From NCBI RefSeq assembly GCF_001194135.2, contig NC_068985.1, positions 104,689,533 to 104,753,532 on the forward strand: a stretch of 64,000 nucleotides of DNA, written 5' to 3'. Below, piece by piece: positions 3,102 to 64,000 of this stretch (positions are counted from its first letter, which is position 1; every line of letters starts with the position of its first letter). The notes beneath the pieces were generated by a model that saw only the letters and a program-made list of their open reading frames with translations, was not told where the DNA came from and ran no database searches. Both the position numbers and the translations under genes were made by a program. This DNA is from Octopus bimaculoides (lineage: Eukaryota).

Positions 3102-3938
3102 TGCTAGTGCCCCACCATCACTTAAAAGTACACTCTGTAAAGTGGTGTTAAGAAGGACATCCAGCCAGAGAAACCAGGCCAAAGTTAATATTGAATCTTG
3201 ACGTAGCCTTATAACTCATGGGTTCCTGTCAAACTGTCCAAGCCAAGCCAGCATGGGAAATGGACATTAGTGGCAATGATTTATCTATTTATCATATATT
3301 TTCTGAAGAATGGTGTGATTGGTTATAGATTTTCAACTGGCCAATTACTGACCCTTAGATTTCCAATAACAAAAGTGACAAGTGCGACATCTGTACAACT
3401 CAGATGGAGTAAATACTGTAAGATATTTTTGCTCAATGCACTAACTTACGACTTTTCGCATTATATATTTTACCACTTTGACTATATTTTCACCAATGTC
3501 TTGTAGGTAGGTGGAAACTAATCATGAGAGAGAGGAGAGTGTGTGTGTGTATGTATGTGTGTGTGTGTGTATGTTTAAGTTACCAGCAATCAGTTATTTT
3601 CAATTATTTCAAAACTGTAACTTACTGGTTCAACAAATAGATTTTGATAAAACAAATACCAAATTAAAACAAGTATTGATGTTTCTGATACAGTTAAATA
3701 AAAACCCATGAAAGTGGCACCAGAGCCTGGCTGCAATCTGCTGACTGAATTTCAATGCCAAGGTATTAACTCAAACTTCTTACAAATCACTTGTCCCTCA
3801 TGCTGTGCAAGGGTATTGAACACAGCCACGTCTGTGTCTATAGTGATTACTCATATATTAAACATAGATAATACAGAATAAAATACATTTTTTTTTTTTT
3901 TGTGTTTATGTACTTCTTTCTCTTCTATTTCTCTACAG

Positions 3939-4973
3939 GTTGTTCCAGCTCATGTTTTGAGAGAGGAGTTCCGCAAGCAAAGAGCGTCTCGTGAGAATGC
4001 TGAACAGGAGTATTTAGAGCATATCTCTCGCAAAAAACACCTGCAAAGCATGCGCAAAGATCGGTCAATGATTCATATGATTCAACGAATGGCAAAGATG
4101 AAATTACAGAATTTAAATGAGGATCACTTGAAGCTGATGGATCAGCAGTTGGATAATGATGCTATTCTGCAACTGGACCAATGCTTGCCTGAAGTCCCAC
4201 AACATTTAACGCAAAATGGTACTGAAAACACTGTTGAGAGAGATGTAGCATATGGTGATGTGTTAGAGAATCACAATTATGAAAGAAATGGAAATGATGC
4301 CCTTGTTGATTTTCTCAGTGAAGTCAATGACAGGCAGTTAAATAAAGCAATACTTGACAATGGACCTGTCAATGGAAATGAAAATGACGATTATAATCTA
4401 GGCATGTCACCGTTAAAAATGAGACCATCCATCAAAAAGCGAACACTTCCCAAAATTGACATAAATTTAAATGAGCTTGATGGTGTTAATGATAGTGATG
4501 ATGACAGTGATGAAGACTATGAGAACAATGCCGGCAATCACTCGGAGTATAATCTTGATTTTGATAAACATGGTGTCAGACTGACGCCTATTTCAGAAAA
4601 AGAAGAAGAAATTGATGATTTCTTTAAAAGCACTCTAACTCAGAACCAGAATGGTCCTGAGTCTGATGAATCTGAAGAAAGTGTTGACAATGTGAGAGAG
4701 GCAGTAGAAGAGATAATAGGAGCAGAGACTGTTGAACGGGTAAACGCCTATCCATCTTTGGATGACAGCGAAGACAGTTTAGTCGAAAGACTATCAGAAC
4801 TACGAGGGAAAGAAGTAAACCCAAAAGTTCCCTTGAGAGTGAAAAGAAACCTGGAAGAAAAAGTAAAAGAGGAGGAGATTATTGTAAGAGAAGAGCCAAA
4901 GAAACAAGAGGATCTTACAGAGAAACTGCTCCAACAAGTAGCTTCTATTGAAAGAACAATTGAAGAAGATGAG
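3939..4973 (+). CDS. KY-like protein, 345-codon charged helical plus acidic low-complexity exon
   Basis: Acceptor ctctacag|gtt phase 0, donor gag|gtactt phase 0; stop-free, E/D/N-rich. Confidence 0.8.
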
Positions 4974-5017
4974 GTACTTGTACCTTTTGATTTTATCTTA
5001 TTCTTTTCTAACCTATG

Positions 5018-5055
<38 letters not shown>

Positions 5056-5057
5056 TC

Positions 5058-5268
5058 TTTTACTTTATTACTTGTTTCAGTCATTTGACTGCGGCCATGC
5101 TGGAGCACCACCTTTTATTCGAGCAAATCGACCCCAGGACTTATTCTTTGGAAACCTAGTACTTATTCTATTGGTCTCTTTTGCCGAACCGCTAAGTTAC
5201 GGGGACGTAAACACACCAGCATCGGTTGTCAAGCGATGCTGGGGCAACAAACACAGACACACAAACAT

Positions 5269-11000: not shown

Positions 11001-11314
11001 CGGCCAAGAAATTCATGGTTGAAAGAAATAGCTTTGGTGATGGGGTTGAAATTAGCTGAGAGTTGATCTATTTTACTGTTGTCCTTTCCAATATTTTAAG
11101 TCAAAATCAATCTTTATAAATTAAGATTTTCAAGGTGGGTAAAAATTTTGGATCTTTTTTAAAACGGGGGCCACATTTTTCATTAACGAAACACTTTGAA
11201 ACTTGGAACACTGGTAGAACGTGTCATATAAAACATCTTTTTCTCTTAGTCTTCTTTTAAAAAAAAGAAATCCATAAATTATTCCATGTTAAAGTTGTCG
11301 TATTTCTGTAATTT

Positions 11315-12185
11315 NNNNNNNNNNNNNNNNNNNNNNNNNNNNNNNNNNNNNNNNNNNNNNNNNNNNNNNNNNNNNNNNNNNNNNNNNNNNNNNNNNNNNN
11401 NNNNNNNNNNNNNNNNNNNNNNNNNNNNNNNNNNNNNNNNNNNNNNNNNNNNNNNNNNNNNNNNNNNNNNNNNNNNNNNNNNNNNNNNNNNNNNNNNNNN
11501 NNNNNNNNNNNNNNNNNNNNNNNNNNNNNNNNNNNNNNNNNNNNNNNNNNNNNNNNNNNNNNNNNNNNNNNNNNNNNNNNNNNNNNNNNNNNNNNNNNNN
11601 NNNNNNNNNNNNNNNNNNNNNNNNNNNNNNNNNNNNNNNNNNNNNNNNNNNNNNNNNNNNNNNNNNNNNNNNNNNNNNNNNNNNNNNNNNNNNNNNNNNN
11701 NNNNNNNNNNNNNNNNNNNNNNNNNNNNNNNNNNNNNNNNNNNNNNNNNNNNNNNNNNNNNNNNNNNNNNNNNNNNNNNNNNNNNNNNNNNNNNNNNNNN
11801 NNNNNNNNNNNNNNNNNNNNNNNNNNNNNNNNNNNNNNNNNNNNNNNNNNNNNNNNNNNNNNNNNNNNNNNNNNNNNNNNNNNNNNNNNNNNNNNNNNNN
11901 NNNNNNNNNNNNNNNNNNNNNNNNNNNNNNNNNNNNNNNNNNNNNNNNNNNNNNNNNNNNNNNNNNNNNNNNNNNNNNNNNNNNNNNNNNNNNNNNNNNN
12001 NNNNNNNNNNNNNNNNNNNNNNNNNNNNNNNNNNNNNNNNNNNNNNNNNNNNNNNNNNNNNNNNNNNNNNNNNNNNNNNNNNNNNNNNNNNNNNNNNNNN
12101 NNNNNNNNNNNNNNNNNNNNNNNNNNNNNNNNNNNNNNNNNNNNNNNNNNNNNNNNNNNNNNNNNNNNNNNNNNNNNNNNNNNNN
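11315..12185. other. Assembly gap (others: 13360-13840, 27459-27468, 27922-28424, 31422-31937, 42414-42448, 55674-56170, 56911-57181, 57531-57540)
   Basis: Runs of N, mostly next to microsatellites or poly(A). Confidence 1.
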
Positions 12186-14616: not shown

Positions 14617-17600
14617 TTATATAAAAGAAAAGTTTTCTTCACGATCACAAGATGTCGCTAACGTAGTGTGACTGTAATCAGTCAGATTGTCGCATAATGT
14701 ATTGTTATTCGCATCACTGAAGTGGTTTTCATTCAGTGACGCATGACAGCCAACATCATCCTTTTTTACTGGAGTTTTGGACATTTCAGTAATCAACAAT
14801 TTTTCTGCTATGTTTCCGTTATTGTTCCAGTTTGAATGTACTTCGGGAATTTTTAAGAAATTCCTTCTGTTTTGAAAGGTACTTTCTTTATCTTGACAAT
14901 TGTTGGATTGAGAAGTAGCATACATTGATTTCTTTTCAAGTGAAATCGAATATTTTGGAAAATTATACTCACTGTAGATATTTTTTGATCTAGACTTCGG
15001 CTGACATCTTAAATCTTCCTTTATTGTGCTGGATTTTGAAAAGCAGATATCAGCCGGTTGATATCTCTTACTCAGATGTTTTTTCAATGGAGAAGCCGAT
15101 ACTGGTGTAGTGTGTTCTTTCAGTTGAAATTTATCAGAATCTTTTCCCTTTTGTTTAGATTCCCAATTTTCACAAATACGTTGCTCTAAACTATAACCAT
15201 CATTTGTATCAAGAACTAAACAATTGTTTTCATTAAAGTAAGACATTCCAGTGGAGTTTGAACCTGCTTGAATCAAAACTGGGTTGTTTTCATTTTCTTT
15301 CTGATTGTTAAGTTGGTTTTCATCCCTGAAGTCTAAAGTGTTGGGATATTTATCAAATGGAATGTCTGAAATTAAACCACATTTTTGTTTATTATCAAAA
15401 ATATTTGATGATTCTAATCTATTTTTGGTGCAAGAATAATGACCCCGATACCGGGAGTTAGTCGATTCCATTTTGAGTGGCTCAAATGCAGCAACAGTGT
15501 TCATAGATTTGAAAGCATTAAAGTTGTCCATACCTAAGCTTTCACTTACTGGACTATTAACACTTTTGTCGGGAAGACCTATTTTCTCTTGACTAGAAAT
15601 ATTACAATTAATATCCATGCGAGTTGGTTTGGTTTTATATGCTTCGTTTCCGTCATTAAAGCGAGAGAAACCATTGCTGCCAGCCACTGAAAAAATACTA
15701 TCGTTCTTGTTTTTTTGCAACAACAATGGGTTATAATAATTTGTATTCTTTCCGGTCTGTAAAAGTTGTCTCTCACAGAAACTGGAAACTTTGGGTGGTT
15801 CGAATTGATACGGAGAAGATGGAACTAAGTTTGGTCTATTTTTATAGAAAGGAATAAAGTCCAGACCAGTTTCACAACCTTGGGATGAGACTGAAAGATT
15901 TCTTTTATCTGGACCTGAAAAAGTATATGTCTCGGCTTTCGAAAACCTGTTGTTCTTGACATTTGCTGAAGTTAATTCGACATCTCTGTTCTCTCTCGGA
16001 GGAGCAGTTTTTGATCGATCGTTATCGCCTGTTATTGGGACTAAATGTTGTTTCATGTGGTCATGAAGCGGTTTATCTGTAGAAAAGTGCGCCGAACAAT
16101 TAATACACTTCATTTCATGAGATTTTATATGTTTTTTGAAAACATTTAGATTATGGAAAACTTCTCCGCATATTTCACACAAACGGATAGAACTGGATGA
16201 AACAGCATGAGAATTATCTCTGGTTTGTAATATCGAGTGGTCTTTCTCGTGGTCAAAATAACCGTCTGGACTCGTAAAAACTTCGTGGCAGACTTTACAA
16301 TGAAATGGCGGCTTACCAAAATGACTGTCCATGTGGGAATTAAAGTTGCAAGCGCTCATGAAAACTTTCCTGCAATATTTACACTGATAAAGCAAATTTG
16401 AGTGATGTTGAATTTTATATTCATTCGAGTAAAATTCAGAATAAGATGCTGGAATCTCGTAATGGTCCATTTCATGAAGATTCCGTTCTGGTACATTTTG
16501 ACAAATAGCTGAGCAAAAACTACATTGGTTAAACGTATTTGGTTTTAAATTCATCTCACTATACCCGTTAGTCTTGGGTTCACCATTTATGCAACTGAGG
16601 GCTGGGATATGTTCCGAGCTTGTTTCTAAATTTGTTTCGTCTGGATCCTCTTCTAATGATTCAAAATCTGATTTCAAAGTACAGTTTTCTGCATGAATCG
16701 GTAAGTGCATTTTCAACGTTGTGAAAGATAAAAAAATTTGGGAGCAAAAAGGACATTGCTTGGAGTTGTTTCTCTCTTTTAGCAAGGCCGACTTCAAGGA
16801 CATTCCTTCTGATTTAGCAATCACATCTTTATTTTCACAAGTTGCCTCGTGTTTCTTTAGCAGATAACGACTTCTGAAGATTACATCACAAAACCCACAG
16901 TGAAGTTGCTCCATTGAATGGGAGATTAAATGTATTGCAAGCTGGTTCCGCTTGAACCATACACCACAGCGTTCACATTCTATCACGGAACTACCCGTTC
17001 GACCTAATCTCTTAAGCGAGCGATGGGGACTTTGTAAAAGGACTTTTGCCTTCAACTTTATCAGTATCTTTTTGTAATGGACACTTCTGAAATTACATTT
17101 GACACAAGTGGAGTGTTCTGGAAAGTGACTTCTTAAATGTGCTACCGTGAAATTTTCATCAGCTTTAATATTTTTATAACAGAAAGGGCACCGACAATAA
17201 TTTGAACAAGAATCGACTTTAAATAACTTCATAAGTTTATCAATATTATTTGAACAGCTTTCGCATTTAGGGAGATGCAGAATATCTTTTTTATGACTCT
17301 CCAGGTGCCTCTGAAGATGCAAACCAATAATAAATGTTTTAGAACAGTAATCACATACGTAGGGAGCTTGTTTGCTATGAATTCGTAAATGAACCAACAA
17401 GTAAGAAATATGAGAGAAATCTTTCTGACATATCTTGCATTGGAATAGTTTAATATTTCGATTGTGTTTTAAAAAGTCAACCATACTGGCTGAAAGGCAA
17501 ATCTTCTGCAAAATATCCCCGCATTTTCGGCCATTATATTTGGACGGAACGTTTCTGTGTTTCATGAAAGATATGAAAGTTCGAAATTTCTCATCGCACC

Positions 17601-17634
17601 GATTACATTTGAAACTCAACGAAGTCCTTTCGAT
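14617..17634 (-). CDS. C2H2 zinc-finger protein, main exon (about 1005 codons, roughly 11-13 fingers plus an N/S-rich tail)
   Basis: Stop-free ORF with fingers such as CKICQKDFSHISYLLVHLRIH, CDYCSKTFIIGLHLQRHLESH and CKYCRKVFMSACNFNSHMDSH; the ORF-track start is TTG, and an acceptor ttttccag|atc (phase 0) lies at 17634. Confidence 0.9.
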   Translation of the reverse strand: MERTSLSFKCNRCDEKFRTFISFMKHRNVPSKYNGRKCGDILQKICLSASMVDFLKHNRNIKLFQCKICQKDFSHISYLLVHLRIHSKQAPYVCDYCSKTFIIGLHLQRHLESHKKDILHLPKCESCSNNIDKLMKLFKVDSCSNYCRCPFCYKNIKADENFTVAHLRSHFPEHSTCVKCNFRSVHYKKILIKLKAKVLLQSPHRSLKRLGRTGSSVIECERCGVWFKRNQLAIHLISHSMEQLHCGFCDVIFRSRYLLKKHEATCENKDVIAKSEGMSLKSALLKERNNSKQCPFCSQIFLSFTTLKMHLPIHAENCTLKSDFESLEEDPDETNLETSSEHIPALSCINGEPKTNGYSEMNLKPNTFNQCSFCSAICQNVPERNLHEMDHYEIPASYSEFYSNEYKIQHHSNLLYQCKYCRKVFMSACNFNSHMDSHFGKPPFHCKVCHEVFTSPDGYFDHEKDHSILQTRDNSHAVSSSSIRLCEICGEVFHNLNVFKKHIKSHEMKCINCSAHFSTDKPLHDHMKQHLVPITGDNDRSKTAPPRENRDVELTSANVKNNRFSKAETYTFSGPDKRNLSVSSQGCETGLDFIPFYKNRPNLVPSSPYQFEPPKVSSFCERQLLQTGKNTNYYNPLLLQKNKNDSIFSVAGSNGFSRFNDGNEAYKTKPTRMDINCNISSQEKIGLPDKSVNSPVSESLGMDNFNAFKSMNTVAAFEPLKMESTNSRYRGHYSCTKNRLESSNIFDNKQKCGLISDIPFDKYPNTLDFRDENQLNNQKENENNPVLIQAGSNSTGMSYFNENNCLVLDTNDGYSLEQRICENWESKQKGKDSDKFQLKEHTTPVSASPLKKHLSKRYQPADICFSKSSTIKEDLRCQPKSRSKNIYSEYNFPKYSISLEKKSMYATSQSNNCQDKESTFQNRRNFLKIPEVHSNWNNNGNIAEKLLITEMSKTPVKKDDVGCHASLNENHFSDANNNTLCDNLTDYSHTTLATSCDREENFSFI

Positions 17635-17705
17635 CTGGAAAACAATTACATCTTTAAGAAAATTCAAAAATAACTATTCCTACTCAGCAATCATTTTAAA
17701 ACAAT

Positions 17706-33682: not shown

Positions 33683-33835
33683 CTACTGTTCAATCCAAGA
33701 TGGCTTTGAAGAATTGGCTGTTTTCAATTTAATGTTGAACTGCTTCAATGTTGCATCCAAAGCTGTCTCATTCCCACTGAAGTATGCCGACACCGCATTG
33801 TGGAACAAAAGAAGTTGCTTGTGCATGACTTTCAC
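33683..33835 (-). CDS. Arfip: Arfaptin, last exon
   Basis: ttcag|gtg phase 0; [38 protein letters not shown]...SWIEQ* is the arfaptin C-terminus. Confidence 0.95.
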
Positions 33836-35651: not shown

Positions 35652-35826
35652 CTTATTTTCTTCCAAAAAATTTAGCTTGATGGCTACATCAGCACGTAGA
35701 GATTCATATTTTTGTTTATGTTCTTCAAACTTGGTCTTGGCATCTTCAACTTTGGGTATAGAATTACTATCTCGTGGTCCCATTTGAGCAAACTCAAGGT
35801 CATTTCTATATGCATCATATTCCAGT
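35652..35826 (-). CDS. Arfip: Arfaptin, AH/BAR exon
   Basis: ttccag|a phase 2 to aag|gtaaga phase 0; LEYDAYRNDLE...YESLRADVAIKLNFLEENK. Confidence 0.95.
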
Positions 35827-36895: not shown

Positions 36896-36989
36896 CTAGC
36901 ATTTTCATACTGTTTTATTGTAAGTAGAGTGTCTTCCATAGTTTTATTGCATAGTGTGTTCACAGAAGAAGTAAAAAAATTCATGGCAC
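36896..36989 (-). CDS. Arfip: Arfaptin, AH/BAR exon
   Basis: ttctag|gt phase 1 to ag|gttagt phase 2; [32 protein letters not shown]. Confidence 0.95.
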
Positions 36990-37177: not shown

Positions 37178-37588
37178 CCAATAGTACTTCACCATTTCTA
37201 CTTAGTGTTCTCTGTGTTTCAGAATTGTAAGTAAATTCCTCCTGGAGATCTGGAGATTTTGCAGCTAACTCAGAGAAAGATTCTCCAAGAGCTTTTTGAG
37301 TTTGCACCACATAATAGAAATGATTGGTTAGAGAACGTGCCAGACGCAAAATGTTGCAATATTTGCGTTGTGTTTCACGCAAAGCTTCGATCTGAGTTTC
37401 CAACTCCAGATCTACAGTTCGCGAACCCTTGCCAAATTTTTCAGATAAAAGTTGACGAGTACATTTGTATGTATTCAAGCTCCATGAGCGAATTGTGTCA
37501 ATCTTGGATACAGCAGTCTGAGTGACACTGCCTTTAGGTACGAAATCTCCATTGCTCTGAGGACTCGACAGTGGAATATTACTTGTGG
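37178..37588 (-). CDS. Arfip: Arfaptin, amphipathic helix and start of the AH/BAR domain
   Basis: tttcag|cc phase 1 to g|gtaagt phase 1; [45 protein letters not shown]. Confidence 0.95.
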
Positions 37589-50392: not shown

Positions 50393-50491
50393 CTGCCAAA
50401 GAAAAGCAACCTGTGGGATACAGTTTGCTTGATATTGTTCGAGTCATCCCATTTGAGTCTGAAGCTTTCTGAGACTTCTCTGAAGGGGTAG
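50393..50491 (-). CDS. Arfip: Probable arfaptin N-terminal exon (ATPSEKSQKASDSNGMTRTISSKLYPTGCFSLA)
   Basis: ttttttctggttag|ct phase 1, donor gcag|gttagt phase 1, 99 nt, joins 37588 in frame; alternative in-frame donor at 50411. Confidence 0.55.
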
Positions 50492-55673: not shown

Positions 55674-56170
55674 NNNNNNNNNNNNNNNNNNNNNNNNNNN
55701 NNNNNNNNNNNNNNNNNNNNNNNNNNNNNNNNNNNNNNNNNNNNNNNNNNNNNNNNNNNNNNNNNNNNNNNNNNNNNNNNNNNNNNNNNNNNNNNNNNNN
55801 NNNNNNNNNNNNNNNNNNNNNNNNNNNNNNNNNNNNNNNNNNNNNNNNNNNNNNNNNNNNNNNNNNNNNNNNNNNNNNNNNNNNNNNNNNNNNNNNNNNN
55901 NNNNNNNNNNNNNNNNNNNNNNNNNNNNNNNNNNNNNNNNNNNNNNNNNNNNNNNNNNNNNNNNNNNNNNNNNNNNNNNNNNNNNNNNNNNNNNNNNNNN
56001 NNNNNNNNNNNNNNNNNNNNNNNNNNNNNNNNNNNNNNNNNNNNNNNNNNNNNNNNNNNNNNNNNNNNNNNNNNNNNNNNNNNNNNNNNNNNNNNNNNNN
56101 NNNNNNNNNNNNNNNNNNNNNNNNNNNNNNNNNNNNNNNNNNNNNNNNNNNNNNNNNNNNNNNNNNNNNN

Positions 56171-56246
<76 letters not shown>

Positions 56247-56381
56247 TGTGATGCTTCAATATGGCCTTGACAATGGTGGTCAAAACAAAACTAAAGAACT
56301 GACATTAAAGGCACTTCCTTATGAAACAGGAGAAGAGAAGTAGGATGTTGTGATAGGGCTGATTTCATAAGCCAAACTTAC

Positions 56382-56390
56382 CTTCTTGTT
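56382..56390 (-). CDS. Arfip: Candidate 9-nt microexon, probably of arfaptin
   Basis: gctgac branch point, pyrimidine tract, TGC, ttcag|aacaagaag|gtaagt. Confidence 0.55.
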
Positions 56391-56665
56391 CTGAATGCAG
56401 AAGAGATAAAACAAAAAGGTCAGCAATCATGAAAGCAATATATACACAAAGTTATCTTAGCAACGACACAAAGTATACCAAGAATATAGGGAAAAAAAAA
56501 GAAAACAGAATGTAATGTAGAAGGAAAGAACTCTATAATATGAGTAAACATAGCACTGTTATTACAAGGTCTAGGTCATTAATGTACAAACAAAGAATCA
56601 TTACACCCAACTGGAATTTCACATGAAACAGATTATTATGAAATGAAACTCAGATGGAAACAATA

Positions 56666-56910: not shown

Positions 56911-57487
56911 NNNNNNNNNNNNNNNNNNNNNNNNNNNNNNNNNNNNNNNNNNNNNNNNNNNNNNNNNNNNNNNNNNNNNNNNNNNNNNNNNNNNNNNNNN
57001 NNNNNNNNNNNNNNNNNNNNNNNNNNNNNNNNNNNNNNNNNNNNNNNNNNNNNNNNNNNNNNNNNNNNNNNNNNNNNNNNNNNNNNNNNNNNNNNNNNNN
57101 NNNNNNNNNNNNNNNNNNNNNNNNNNNNNNNNNNNNNNNNNNNNNNNNNNNNNNNNNNNNNNNNNNNNNNNNNNNNNNNNNATTGATATTTTAAACACAG
57201 TTTAGCTTTCAAAGATATAAAAGTTTTGCATGTTCAATATTAAGAAATTTCTTGTCAAAACAATAACTTTGATTGGGAACATCACAGCAGTTTGAACTAA
57301 TTATCTTACATGACAGAATGGGGTTCTTATCATTTGTAATGAATCAATGTACCATACTTCAACTATTTTACTGAAAACGTCTGACGTTAAATGTGAGTAA
57401 ATATGTGGATGGGAGTAAATAAGTATGCAAGTGAATGAGTATGACTCAATGAGTTTGAAAATGAACAACTGAACAAGAGCGAAAGTG

Positions 57488-60924: not shown

Positions 60925-61702
60925 TTCCGAGTCTAATTGTGTGCAGAGAGTCAATGTATGCTCTTCTTTGCTGTCGTGTCTCACAAATGAACCTTTTTTA
61001 GACCAAATAATGACTGATGACGAGAAATGGGTTCTCTATAAAAATGTCCTGATCACGAGAAATGGGTTCTCAATAAGAATGTCATGTGCTGAAGACAGTG
61101 GGTAGGGAAAGAAGAAACACTGGCACTCCAGACTAAAGTAAGTCTTCACCCACGTAAGGTGTTGCTATCTCTGTTTGGTGGGATATGAAAGGTTTAGTCT
61201 CCTTTGAACTTTTAAACTCAAACCAAAAGATAACAAAGGAGATCTACTGTGAGCAGCTTGAGTAGCTTCAGTCAGCGCTAGAAGAAAAACGACCATCTTT
61301 GCTTTCGAGACGAAAGATATTCTTCCATCAGGATAATACTCAGCCACATACAGTAAAGATGACATTCCAAAGGCTGGGGCAGTCTGAATGGGAAATGATG
61401 CCCCACCCACCATATTTGCTAGACATTGCCCCATCTTATTACCATTTATTCTGCAGTCTTCAAAATCATTTGGACAGAAAAAATATGAATTCTACAGACG
61501 AGGTCAGAATAGTATTGGAGGAATATTTTTCATCACAGACAAGTGAATTTTGGAAGAGGGGCCTTGCAAGTCTACCAGATAGATGGAAGAACATTGTAGA
61601 AATGAAGGAGAGTATATTTTAGATTAAAAAAGAAGTTTGTTTATCTTAATTCTGAAAAATAAAAGACGTATTAAAAAACGCATTATTTATGGGATGACCC
61701 TA
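60925..61702 (+). pseudogene. Mariner (DD34D-type) transposase, 5'-truncated, with 3' TIR
   Basis: FLDQIMTDDEKWVLYKN, FHQDNTQPH, HPPYLLDIAPSYYHLF; internal stop and a roughly 36-bp duplication; ends aaaacgcattatttatgggatgaccc-ta. Confidence 0.85.
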
Positions 61703-62880: not shown

Positions 62881-64000
62881 AAACTCCATACTAATAATTA
62901 TTTTTATTTAAAATTAGCTAAGGTACTTTTTGTAATGTGCTGCTCAATTGCCTTAGATATTGCATTAAAAAACTCTTTTTTTTTTCCAAATATGCGTTGC
63001 TGCAAATAAGGTGTGTCCAATATCCTTTGTGTGTGTAATATACTCATGCATCTTCTATGCCATCAAATACTGTAGCTATTATAAAAATATTATTGTAAAC
63101 AATTAAAACTTTTGAACCAATAATTTTGAGTAGAATGCATGTAATTATTTCTTACGTAAGCTTTTATTGTTTATAATAAGATATTTGTTAAAGAAATACT
63201 CCTTCAACACGACTTCCTTCTACTTCCTTTTTATATTAACTGAAGACTTTTTTAACTAAACAGCCAACGTGTCAATTATTTATACTGCTAATATACTGTA
63301 TTTTTGCATAGATTACAGTGATAAACAGGCCTTAAAAAAGAATCTCGAGATTAAATTAAGAAAAATAAGGAAAAGGAGAAAGTTTCCTACAGATAATAAC
63401 AAATTTAAATTAGTGTTCAGTTGAAACTTAACGAATATAAACTTTCACTTTCACGGAACATTCTTTAATGATGCAGTTTAAAAAGCAGGCAGATAATCTA
63501 ATAACTTTTCTATTTTATGAACATTAAGTATGAAAATATTAATCTTATACTACCTAGAACAAATCCAGAATAAGAAGAAGGATATTGTTAACTTAAATAC
63601 TGGTGCAAAATTTAATCACTTCTTAAGAGTTGAAAGTCAACAAGAGGGGACAATGAACCCCAAACCAAGAAAGACTAAACTAATTATGATGAACAGGTTA
63701 AGTACAGCCTCCAAGTGTTTTGTTGGTAATGACACTACATGCAAAGAAAAGCTATCAACCCTAAAATAGTAAATTTTTTCCGATTCTAAAATATCAATGC
63801 AATGCAACCACACTGCATTTGATGAGCGCAACATATCTGTACGGTAATATCAACCCATATATATTTCTAATAAAAATTTCAATTTAAACATGTTTATTAT
63901 TGATTTGTAATGTACATACCTTTTTTTTTCCTTTTAAATATATCCATTACAGTCTTAGAATATTAACAAATAAAAAGATACTTAAATGCGTTTCAGCATG

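Follow-up and report, generated by a model that had tools for sequence, protein, structure and literature searches.

A conserved 9-nt alternative microexon in octopus arfaptin-2 with the splice-site layout of neural microexons

The stretch of Octopus bimaculoides DNA analysed here (the window, 64,000 nt in all) carries the arfaptin-2 gene on its minus strand. The exons for the arfaptin AH/BAR domain were located at 37588-33683 by tblastn, with a human ARFIP2 sequence as the probe only, and a search with the spliced model identified the gene as O. bimaculoides arfaptin-2 (for example, ATPSEKSQKASDSNGMTR matches XP_014787138.1). By tblastn, identity between the window exons and the O. bimaculoides protein is 96.8-100%, and the few mismatches fall in exon-junction overhangs. 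An earlier, sequence-only reading had proposed a 9-nt microexon in a trafficking protein of a cephalopod and had assigned it to arfaptin from strand and position. Both species group and gene proved right: the window matches O. bimaculoides arfaptin-2, the AH-domain exons lie on the same minus strand as the microexon, and the microexon is in frame in arfaptin models. In the order of transcription, the features are as follows (a slash marks a splice junction here and below).

56419..56424, minus strand: candidate branch point GCUGAC (GCTGAC in the DNA), its A at 56420, which is -30 from the first exon base; read directly.
56393..56455, minus strand: AG-free zone of about 65 nt before the 3' splice site; within 120 nt upstream, AG occurs only at -67 and -2.
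56400..56418, minus strand: U/C-rich polypyrimidine tract ctttttgttttatctcttc, containing UCUCUUC; 79% pyrimidine at -22..-4.
56397..56399, minus strand: UGC at -9..-7, between the pyrimidine tract and the AG; candidate Srrm/eMIC-responsive intronic enhancer.
56392-56391, minus strand: acceptor AG of the microexon; direct reading.
56382..56390, minus strand: 9-nt alternative cassette microexon AACAAGAAG, phase 1; G/AA CAA GAA G/ gives Glu-Gln-Glu.
56376..56381, minus strand: consensus 5' splice site AAG/GUAAGU; direct reading.
56360..56370, minus strand: downstream intronic element TTaTgAAATcA (+12..+22), with columns T111, T112, T114, A116-T119 and A121 invariant in a four-species alignment.
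50393..50491, minus strand: 99-nt alternative cassette exon (A)TPSEKSQKASDSNGMTRTISSKLYPTGCFSLA, phase 1 in and out; identical to XP_014787138.1 (P0195).
37178..37588, minus strand: first arfaptin (AH/BAR) domain exon, its product starting (A)...; 100% identity to P0076 by tblastn.
36896..36989, minus strand: arfaptin domain exon; boundaries refined from tblastn.
35652..35826, minus strand: arfaptin domain exon; boundaries refined from tblastn.
33683..33835, minus strand: last coding exon of arfaptin-2, VKVMHKQ...SWIEQ and stop; boundaries refined from tblastn.

The first coding exon (MSAETPQ...TGPP) was not found in the window by tblastn. In O. sinensis this exon ends CCACCAG/gtgagg about 19 kb upstream of the microexon, and synteny with that species places the O. 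bimaculoides exon about 12 kb beyond window position 64000. The microexon lies in the long phase-1 intron that follows coding exon 1 (...TGPP + G); transcripts that include it continue either with the 99-nt exon (ATPSEK...) or straight with the first AH-domain exon (ATSNIPL...). The 99-nt exon (ATPSEK...CFSLA, 50491-50393) has the acceptor ttag/CTACC and the donor GCAG/gttagt, both phase 1, and is skipped in the 356- and 359-aa isoforms. In the 392-aa isoform (P0196), the Pfam Arfaptin domain PF06456 spans residues 142-368 (E = 1.1e-72) and the microexon contributes residues 80-82, so that its product sits in the N-terminal linker. Protein searches returned only short genomic ORF fragments for the last arfaptin exon and 13 fragments for a junction-centred 122-aa query, the known isoforms not being among the matches of the latter.

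The assembly has two runs of N near the microexon, one (55674-56170) 212 nt downstream of it and the other (56911-57181) about 520 nt upstream, so that the introns on either side are not complete here. The orthologous locus of O. sinensis (L001) is gap-free and, from the microexon to the 99-nt exon, longer by about 7.6 kb (window 52394/52204 corresponding to L001 24819/32406). Three other open reading frames share the window. Downstream of arfaptin, on the same strand and apparently intronless, an uninterrupted 1018-aa frame (14620-17673, minus strand) encodes a multi-C2H2 zinc-finger protein (Pfam zf-C2H2). A charged-residue-rich frame of 425 aa (3882-5156, plus strand) has no Pfam match and is possibly an exon of a neighboring gene. 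The third (61266-61619, plus strand) lies inside an arfaptin intron and has no Pfam match at E<=0.001; its motifs (...HQDNTQPHT...DIAPSYYHLF...), which we take to resemble the C-terminal catalytic motifs of mariner/Tc1 transposases, suggest that it is probably a decayed transposon remnant.

Read on the minus strand, the microexon region is ...gattGCTGACctttttgttttatctcttcTGCattcAG/AACAAGAAG/GTAAGTttgg, that is, cAG/AACAAGAAG/GTAAGT with the exon at 56390-56382. Every element of the cis signature that the sequence-only reading had listed is in place (the A at 56420, TGC at 56399-56397, the AG and GTAAGT). At 9 nt the exon falls within the 3-27 nt microexon class, and it keeps the frame, adding EQE and no stop codon. 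The GCTGAC at 56419..56424, picked out by eye, would be the branch point, and published work on SRRM3/4 targets points to a likely enhancer role for the UGC at 56397..56399. An Rbfox site was considered for the same stretch and rejected, since UGCAUU/UGCAAU differs from UGCAUG.

How unusual is such a site? A filter demanding at least 75% pyrimidines at -22..-4, an AG, an exon of 3-27 nt in multiples of three and GTRAGT was passed by no site but the microexon on either strand of the 64-kb window. Third-order Markov simulations of the window gave a chance expectation of 0.41 passing sites per window, or 0.07 once a TGC within 20 nt of the AG was also demanded; because the filter was modeled on the observed site, these figures are somewhat favorable and should be read as "uncommon", not as proof. 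The decisive support is the independent transcript and orthology data rather than motif statistics.

In public annotation the microexon and the 99-nt exon occur in all four combinations.

...TGPP-EQE-ATPSEK..., 392 aa: O. sinensis isoform X1, XP_036358834.1, which reads TGPPEQEATPSEK around the junction.
...TGPP-EQE-ATSNIPL..., 359 aa: O. sinensis isoform X3, XP_029636031.1, and O. bimaculoides XP_014787141.1.
...TGPP-ATPSEK..., 389 aa: P0075 and P0195 (XP_014787138.1).
...TGPP-ATSNIPL..., 356 aa: P0077 and P0200.

The EQE insert is thus present in three RefSeq proteins (P0196, P0199 and P0076) and missing from four (P0075, P0195, P0077 and P0200). It is because these other isoforms skip AACAAGAAG that the microexon is classed as alternative, and because the 99-nt cassette is phase 1 in and out, the two exons combine freely to give four isoforms. 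With the exon-1 end taken from O. sinensis, the junction G/AACAAGAAG/CT reads E-Q-E-A; on the same basis the k-mers CCACCAGAACAAGAAGCTACCCC and CCACCAGAACAAGAAGCCACAAGT span the inclusion junctions, and CCACCAGCTACCCCTTC and CCACCAGCCACAAGTAA the skipping junctions. The sequence-only reading had predicted a frame-preserving, phase-1 insertion of (E/K/Q)-Q-E before ATPSEK, and this is exactly what O. sinensis XP_036358834.1 contains.

The same reading had expected standard annotation to miss the exon, which was correct only in part and, for NCBI models, mostly mistaken: it is included in the Gnomon models of O. sinensis X1 and X3 and of O. bimaculoides XP_014787141.1, but the models retrieved for O. 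vulgaris, Argonauta hians and Sepia pharaonis lack it, though the Argonauta and Sepia genomes carry it. The EQE models are themselves NCBI Gnomon predictions, without stated tissue. XP_014787141.1 (P0076) was found only via EukProt, its sibling accessions being in the current NCBI/UniRef sets, and the "isoform X2" label now stands on a different accession. For these reasons the O. bimaculoides microexon isoform may have been dropped from the current release, and the pattern suggests that re-annotation removed it. Some models and contigs, P0201 from O. vulgaris and P0207 from a Sepia esculenta contig, have an N-terminus extended upstream of MSAETPQ (MVPTTTYRQTLDVDVQLSA... and MDVDVHFSSISEA..., respectively), which may point to a start further upstream in frame or to an alternative first exon, kept in both octopus and cuttlefish.

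Conservation in other coleoids had been named as a test of the microexon, and an orthologous exon was found in each of the three further genomic loci compared with the window: O. sinensis (L001), Argonauta hians (L002) and Sepia pharaonis (L003). In all three, the intron that follows exon 1 holds a 9-nt exon flanked by AG and GTAAGT. In O. sinensis it is again AACAAGAAG, with flanks identical over more than 60 nt; in Argonauta it is AACAGGAAG, a synonymous change that still gives EQE; in S. pharaonis it is ACCAGGAAG, which encodes DQE. An alignment of the four species shows almost no variation in TTCTGCA(T/A)TCAG, the exon and GTAAGT; TTCTGCAWTCAG before the exon and GTAAGT after it are the same in all of them. 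The UGC at -9..-7 (TTCTGCA) is likewise fixed in all four, and the pyrimidine tract is T-rich in each. The CTGAC branch site is present in O. sinensis and Argonauta and is not kept in Sepia. The downstream element is invariant as TTnTnAAATnA from octopus to cuttlefish, and was matched to no known factor. Applied to the other loci, the window filter returned exactly the orthologous site in each, plus one UGC-less site in Sepia.

These comparisons differ in what they can tell. The introns of O. bimaculoides and O. sinensis are about 90% identical, which makes the two species too close to be informative. Between O. sinensis and Argonauta, the microexon sits in a conserved island of 147 nt with 77% identity; apart from this island and the 99-nt exon, no colinear block is conserved over some 45 kb of intronic sequence (octopus vs Argonauta). 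The 99-nt exon is conserved in Argonauta (AISSENSMKTSNSNRKARTISSKLYPTGSYSLA; L002 about 11276-11374). Octopus and cuttlefish are separated by a deep split, and blastn of octopus against Sepia introns detected no conserved island; the Sepia orthologue was located solely by pattern search and then confirmed with RNA contigs. In place of the 99-nt exon, the cuttlefish has an unrelated 33-nt exon (GSEMKPAPGCN; L003 35979-36013).

The RNA evidence comes from cuttlefish. Assembled RNA-seq contigs (Logan) of three Sepia esculenta runs (SRR20545812, SRR8281690 and SRR8281668) contain the spliced sequence CCACCAG-ACCAGGAAG-CTACCAGT, encoding AGPP-DQE-ATSNIPL. The 9 nt in these contigs are exactly those flanked by AG and GTAAGT in the S. 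pharaonis genome, and in the UTR the contigs are 96-97% identical to S. pharaonis. SRR20545812 is Sepia esculenta whole-larva RNA and the only identified RNA source with the microexon; the SRR82816xx runs are not mentioned in the papers searched. The 361-aa form P0203 is encoded by at least 17 contigs, of which eight were retrieved; all eight join exon 1 directly to the AH exon (CCACCAG/CTACCAGT). They come from S. esculenta runs other than the three with inclusion, and the skipping runs include SRR8281662, SRR8281669, SRR8281683, SRR8281686 and SRR8281687. Three S. pharaonis contigs use the 33-nt exon instead of the microexon. In the cuttlefish, the microexon is expressed and alternative, and it is the minority form in most libraries.

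Taken with the annotated isoforms, it is virtually certain that octopus arfaptin-2 (ARFIP) possesses a real, conserved 9-nt alternative cassette exon. When included, it lengthens the N-terminal linker by Glu-Gln-Glu (in cuttlefish, Asp-Gln-Glu) some 60 residues ahead of the Arfaptin/BAR domain, directly after an R-x-Y/F-T-x-P-P motif that is conserved across lophotrochozoans and before ATSNIPL and the amphipathic-helix/BAR region.

When would such an exon be included? A 9-nt exon cannot be defined across itself, and would therefore rely on a perfect 5' splice site and an upstream intronic enhancer layout. The code of eMIC targets consists of a UGC near the 3' splice site, long AG-exclusion zones, UCUC-rich tracts and strong branch sites; the eMIC domain of Srrm3/4/Srrm234, expressed in neurons, reads this code in vertebrates, amphioxus and flies and engages SF1 and U2AF (PMC8797185; 10.1101/2024.09.17.613571). 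The domain itself originated in the bilaterian ancestor (PMC8797185). In the octopus, the distant branch site, the long AG-free zone, the UCUC-type tract and the UGC just before the AG would form the layout that the eMIC domain reads, with recruitment of SF1 and U2AF to the site, and neurons, in which an eMIC isoform would be present, would show higher inclusion. From this match in cis-architecture, inclusion is probably neuron-enriched and Srrm/eMIC-dependent. The best explanation overall, to which we give a probability of roughly 0.6, is accordingly a conserved arfaptin-2 cassette whose inclusion would be neuron-enriched and eMIC-dependent. For the protein, one may speculate that two extra negative charges are placed beside the conserved R-x-Y-T-x-P-P linker motif.

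The most serious alternative, possible if somewhat doubtful, is that the microexon is real, alternative and conserved, but that its inclusion lacks either neuron specificity or eMIC dependence. Its alternative use could be widespread, regulated during development, or under PTB-type repression or some other factor, and the conserved UUCUGCA might equally serve such a factor or be part of a constrained 3' splice site. The annotated isoforms with and without the microexon, which come with no tissue information, fit this alternative, as does the observation that the inclusion form is the dominant contig in some whole-larva cuttlefish libraries. The UGC is also short and common, and it is found in only about 75-80% of SRRM3/4 targets, being neither strictly necessary for the SRRM4 response nor specific (10.1101/2024.09.17.613571). 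Furthermore, the arfaptin linker intron is a hotspot of alternative splicing in many protostomes, where the inserts are unrelated. Regulation by the eMIC domain is also weakened by the missing CTGAC in Sepia and by the lack of any arfaptin exon in the fly eMIC-target supplements searched. On the other hand, the published eMIC-target code is matched (9 nt, 65-nt AG-free zone, UC-rich tract, UGC fixed at -9..-7 from octopus to cuttlefish and perfect 5' splice site), and most cuttlefish contigs skip the exon, which suits restricted inclusion. Most very short conserved alternative exons of bilaterians studied so far are, moreover, neural-enriched, and this too counts against a non-neural exon.

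Two further explanations have next to no chance of being correct. Aligners and annotators often miss microexons, and the models that lack this one might thus be annotation errors concealing a constitutive exon, but this is refuted by the RNA contigs that skip it, namely the eight retrieved from S. esculenta (of 17 reported) that join exon 1 directly to the AH exon and the three from S. pharaonis that carry a different 33-nt exon. Nor is the site a chance splice-site look-alike dressed up as isoforms by gene prediction: Gnomon models are indeed predictions and 0.41 sites would be expected per window when no TGC is demanded, but conservation of the exon and its flanks in four species, with only a synonymous difference in Argonauta, and the spliced S. 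esculenta contigs that hold exactly the S. pharaonis 9 nt effectively refute this idea.

Where did the microexon come from? No 3-aa difference between isoforms was found in roughly a dozen molluscs outside the cephalopods, nor in an annelid, a nemertean and a brachiopod; annotated isoforms there differ by 11-29 aa. This is a weak negative, since annotators can miss microexons. Among the molluscs sampled the exon thus appears confined to cephalopods, in which it may have arisen. A more ambitious proposal, that it is a cephalopod-born, eMIC/Srrm234-dependent and neuron-restricted microexon in an arfaptin linker intron that has acquired independent alternative exons in several phyla, falls slightly short of an even bet.

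The gain in knowledge is incremental, because the microexon already exists in RefSeq models and is an ordinary member of a well-described class. Nevertheless, a reading of raw sequence by motif can correctly pick out a real 9-nt exon, and an exon with its UGC kept from octopus to cuttlefish provides a cephalopod test case for the bilaterian eMIC code in cephalopod neurons. Arfaptins work at the trans-Golgi, in the biogenesis of secretory granules and vesicles, and a neuron-specific variant of the linker would for that reason be a plausible modulator of neurosecretory trafficking. If a cephalopod-born neuronal exon is the correct view, a third large-brained lineage would have assembled its own neural microexon program on membrane-trafficking machinery.

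How does the arfaptin exon compare with known systems? The literature searched yielded no paper specific to a microexon in arfaptin or to microexons in cephalopods, and the fly eMIC-target supplements searched list no arfaptin exon. A 2026 preprint on tissue-specific splicing in O. bimaculoides tissue panels probably covers it. The closest records are the RefSeq proteins XP_036358834.1, XP_029636031.1 and XP_014787141.1, which contain EQE at exactly the microexon junction and are computational models with no stated regulation. With the other alternative inserts of protostome arfaptins, the microexon shares its point of insertion, directly before the A-T/M-S-N/P-I/V-P-L motif, but those inserts are longer and unrelated in sequence, and none is a 3-aa microexon. 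They include the 99-nt octopod exon and the 33-nt cuttlefish exon; outside the cephalopods (P0114, P0141, P0152 and P0176 among them), the nemertean Lineus has 11 extra residues at this point and decapod crustaceans have 14, EYGNKWDCYISPFP. Gastropod and bivalve arfaptin isoforms also differ in length by 11-29 aa, most of them with insert positions that were not aligned. The linker intron thus looks like a recurrent hotspot for new exons.

Other BAR-domain trafficking genes have microexons as well, for example EndoB/endophilin B, whose eMIC exon is one of the few common to fly and mammals (PMC8797185). Like arfaptin, it has a tiny neural-type cassette in a BAR-family membrane-remodeling protein, but the gene and the position are different and the exons are without homology. 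With the neural microexons dependent on Srrm3, Srrm4 and Srrm234 (in vertebrates, amphioxus and Drosophila) as a class, the arfaptin exon has in common the 9-nt length, frame preservation, the UGC, the AG-exclusion zone and the UC-rich tract, as well as a strong 5' splice site like that of mammalian targets, the conservation of exon and flanks, and its place within a disordered linker in a membrane-trafficking protein. Those exons are neural-enriched and depend on the eMIC domain, whereas the arfaptin exon is likened to them by its sequence.
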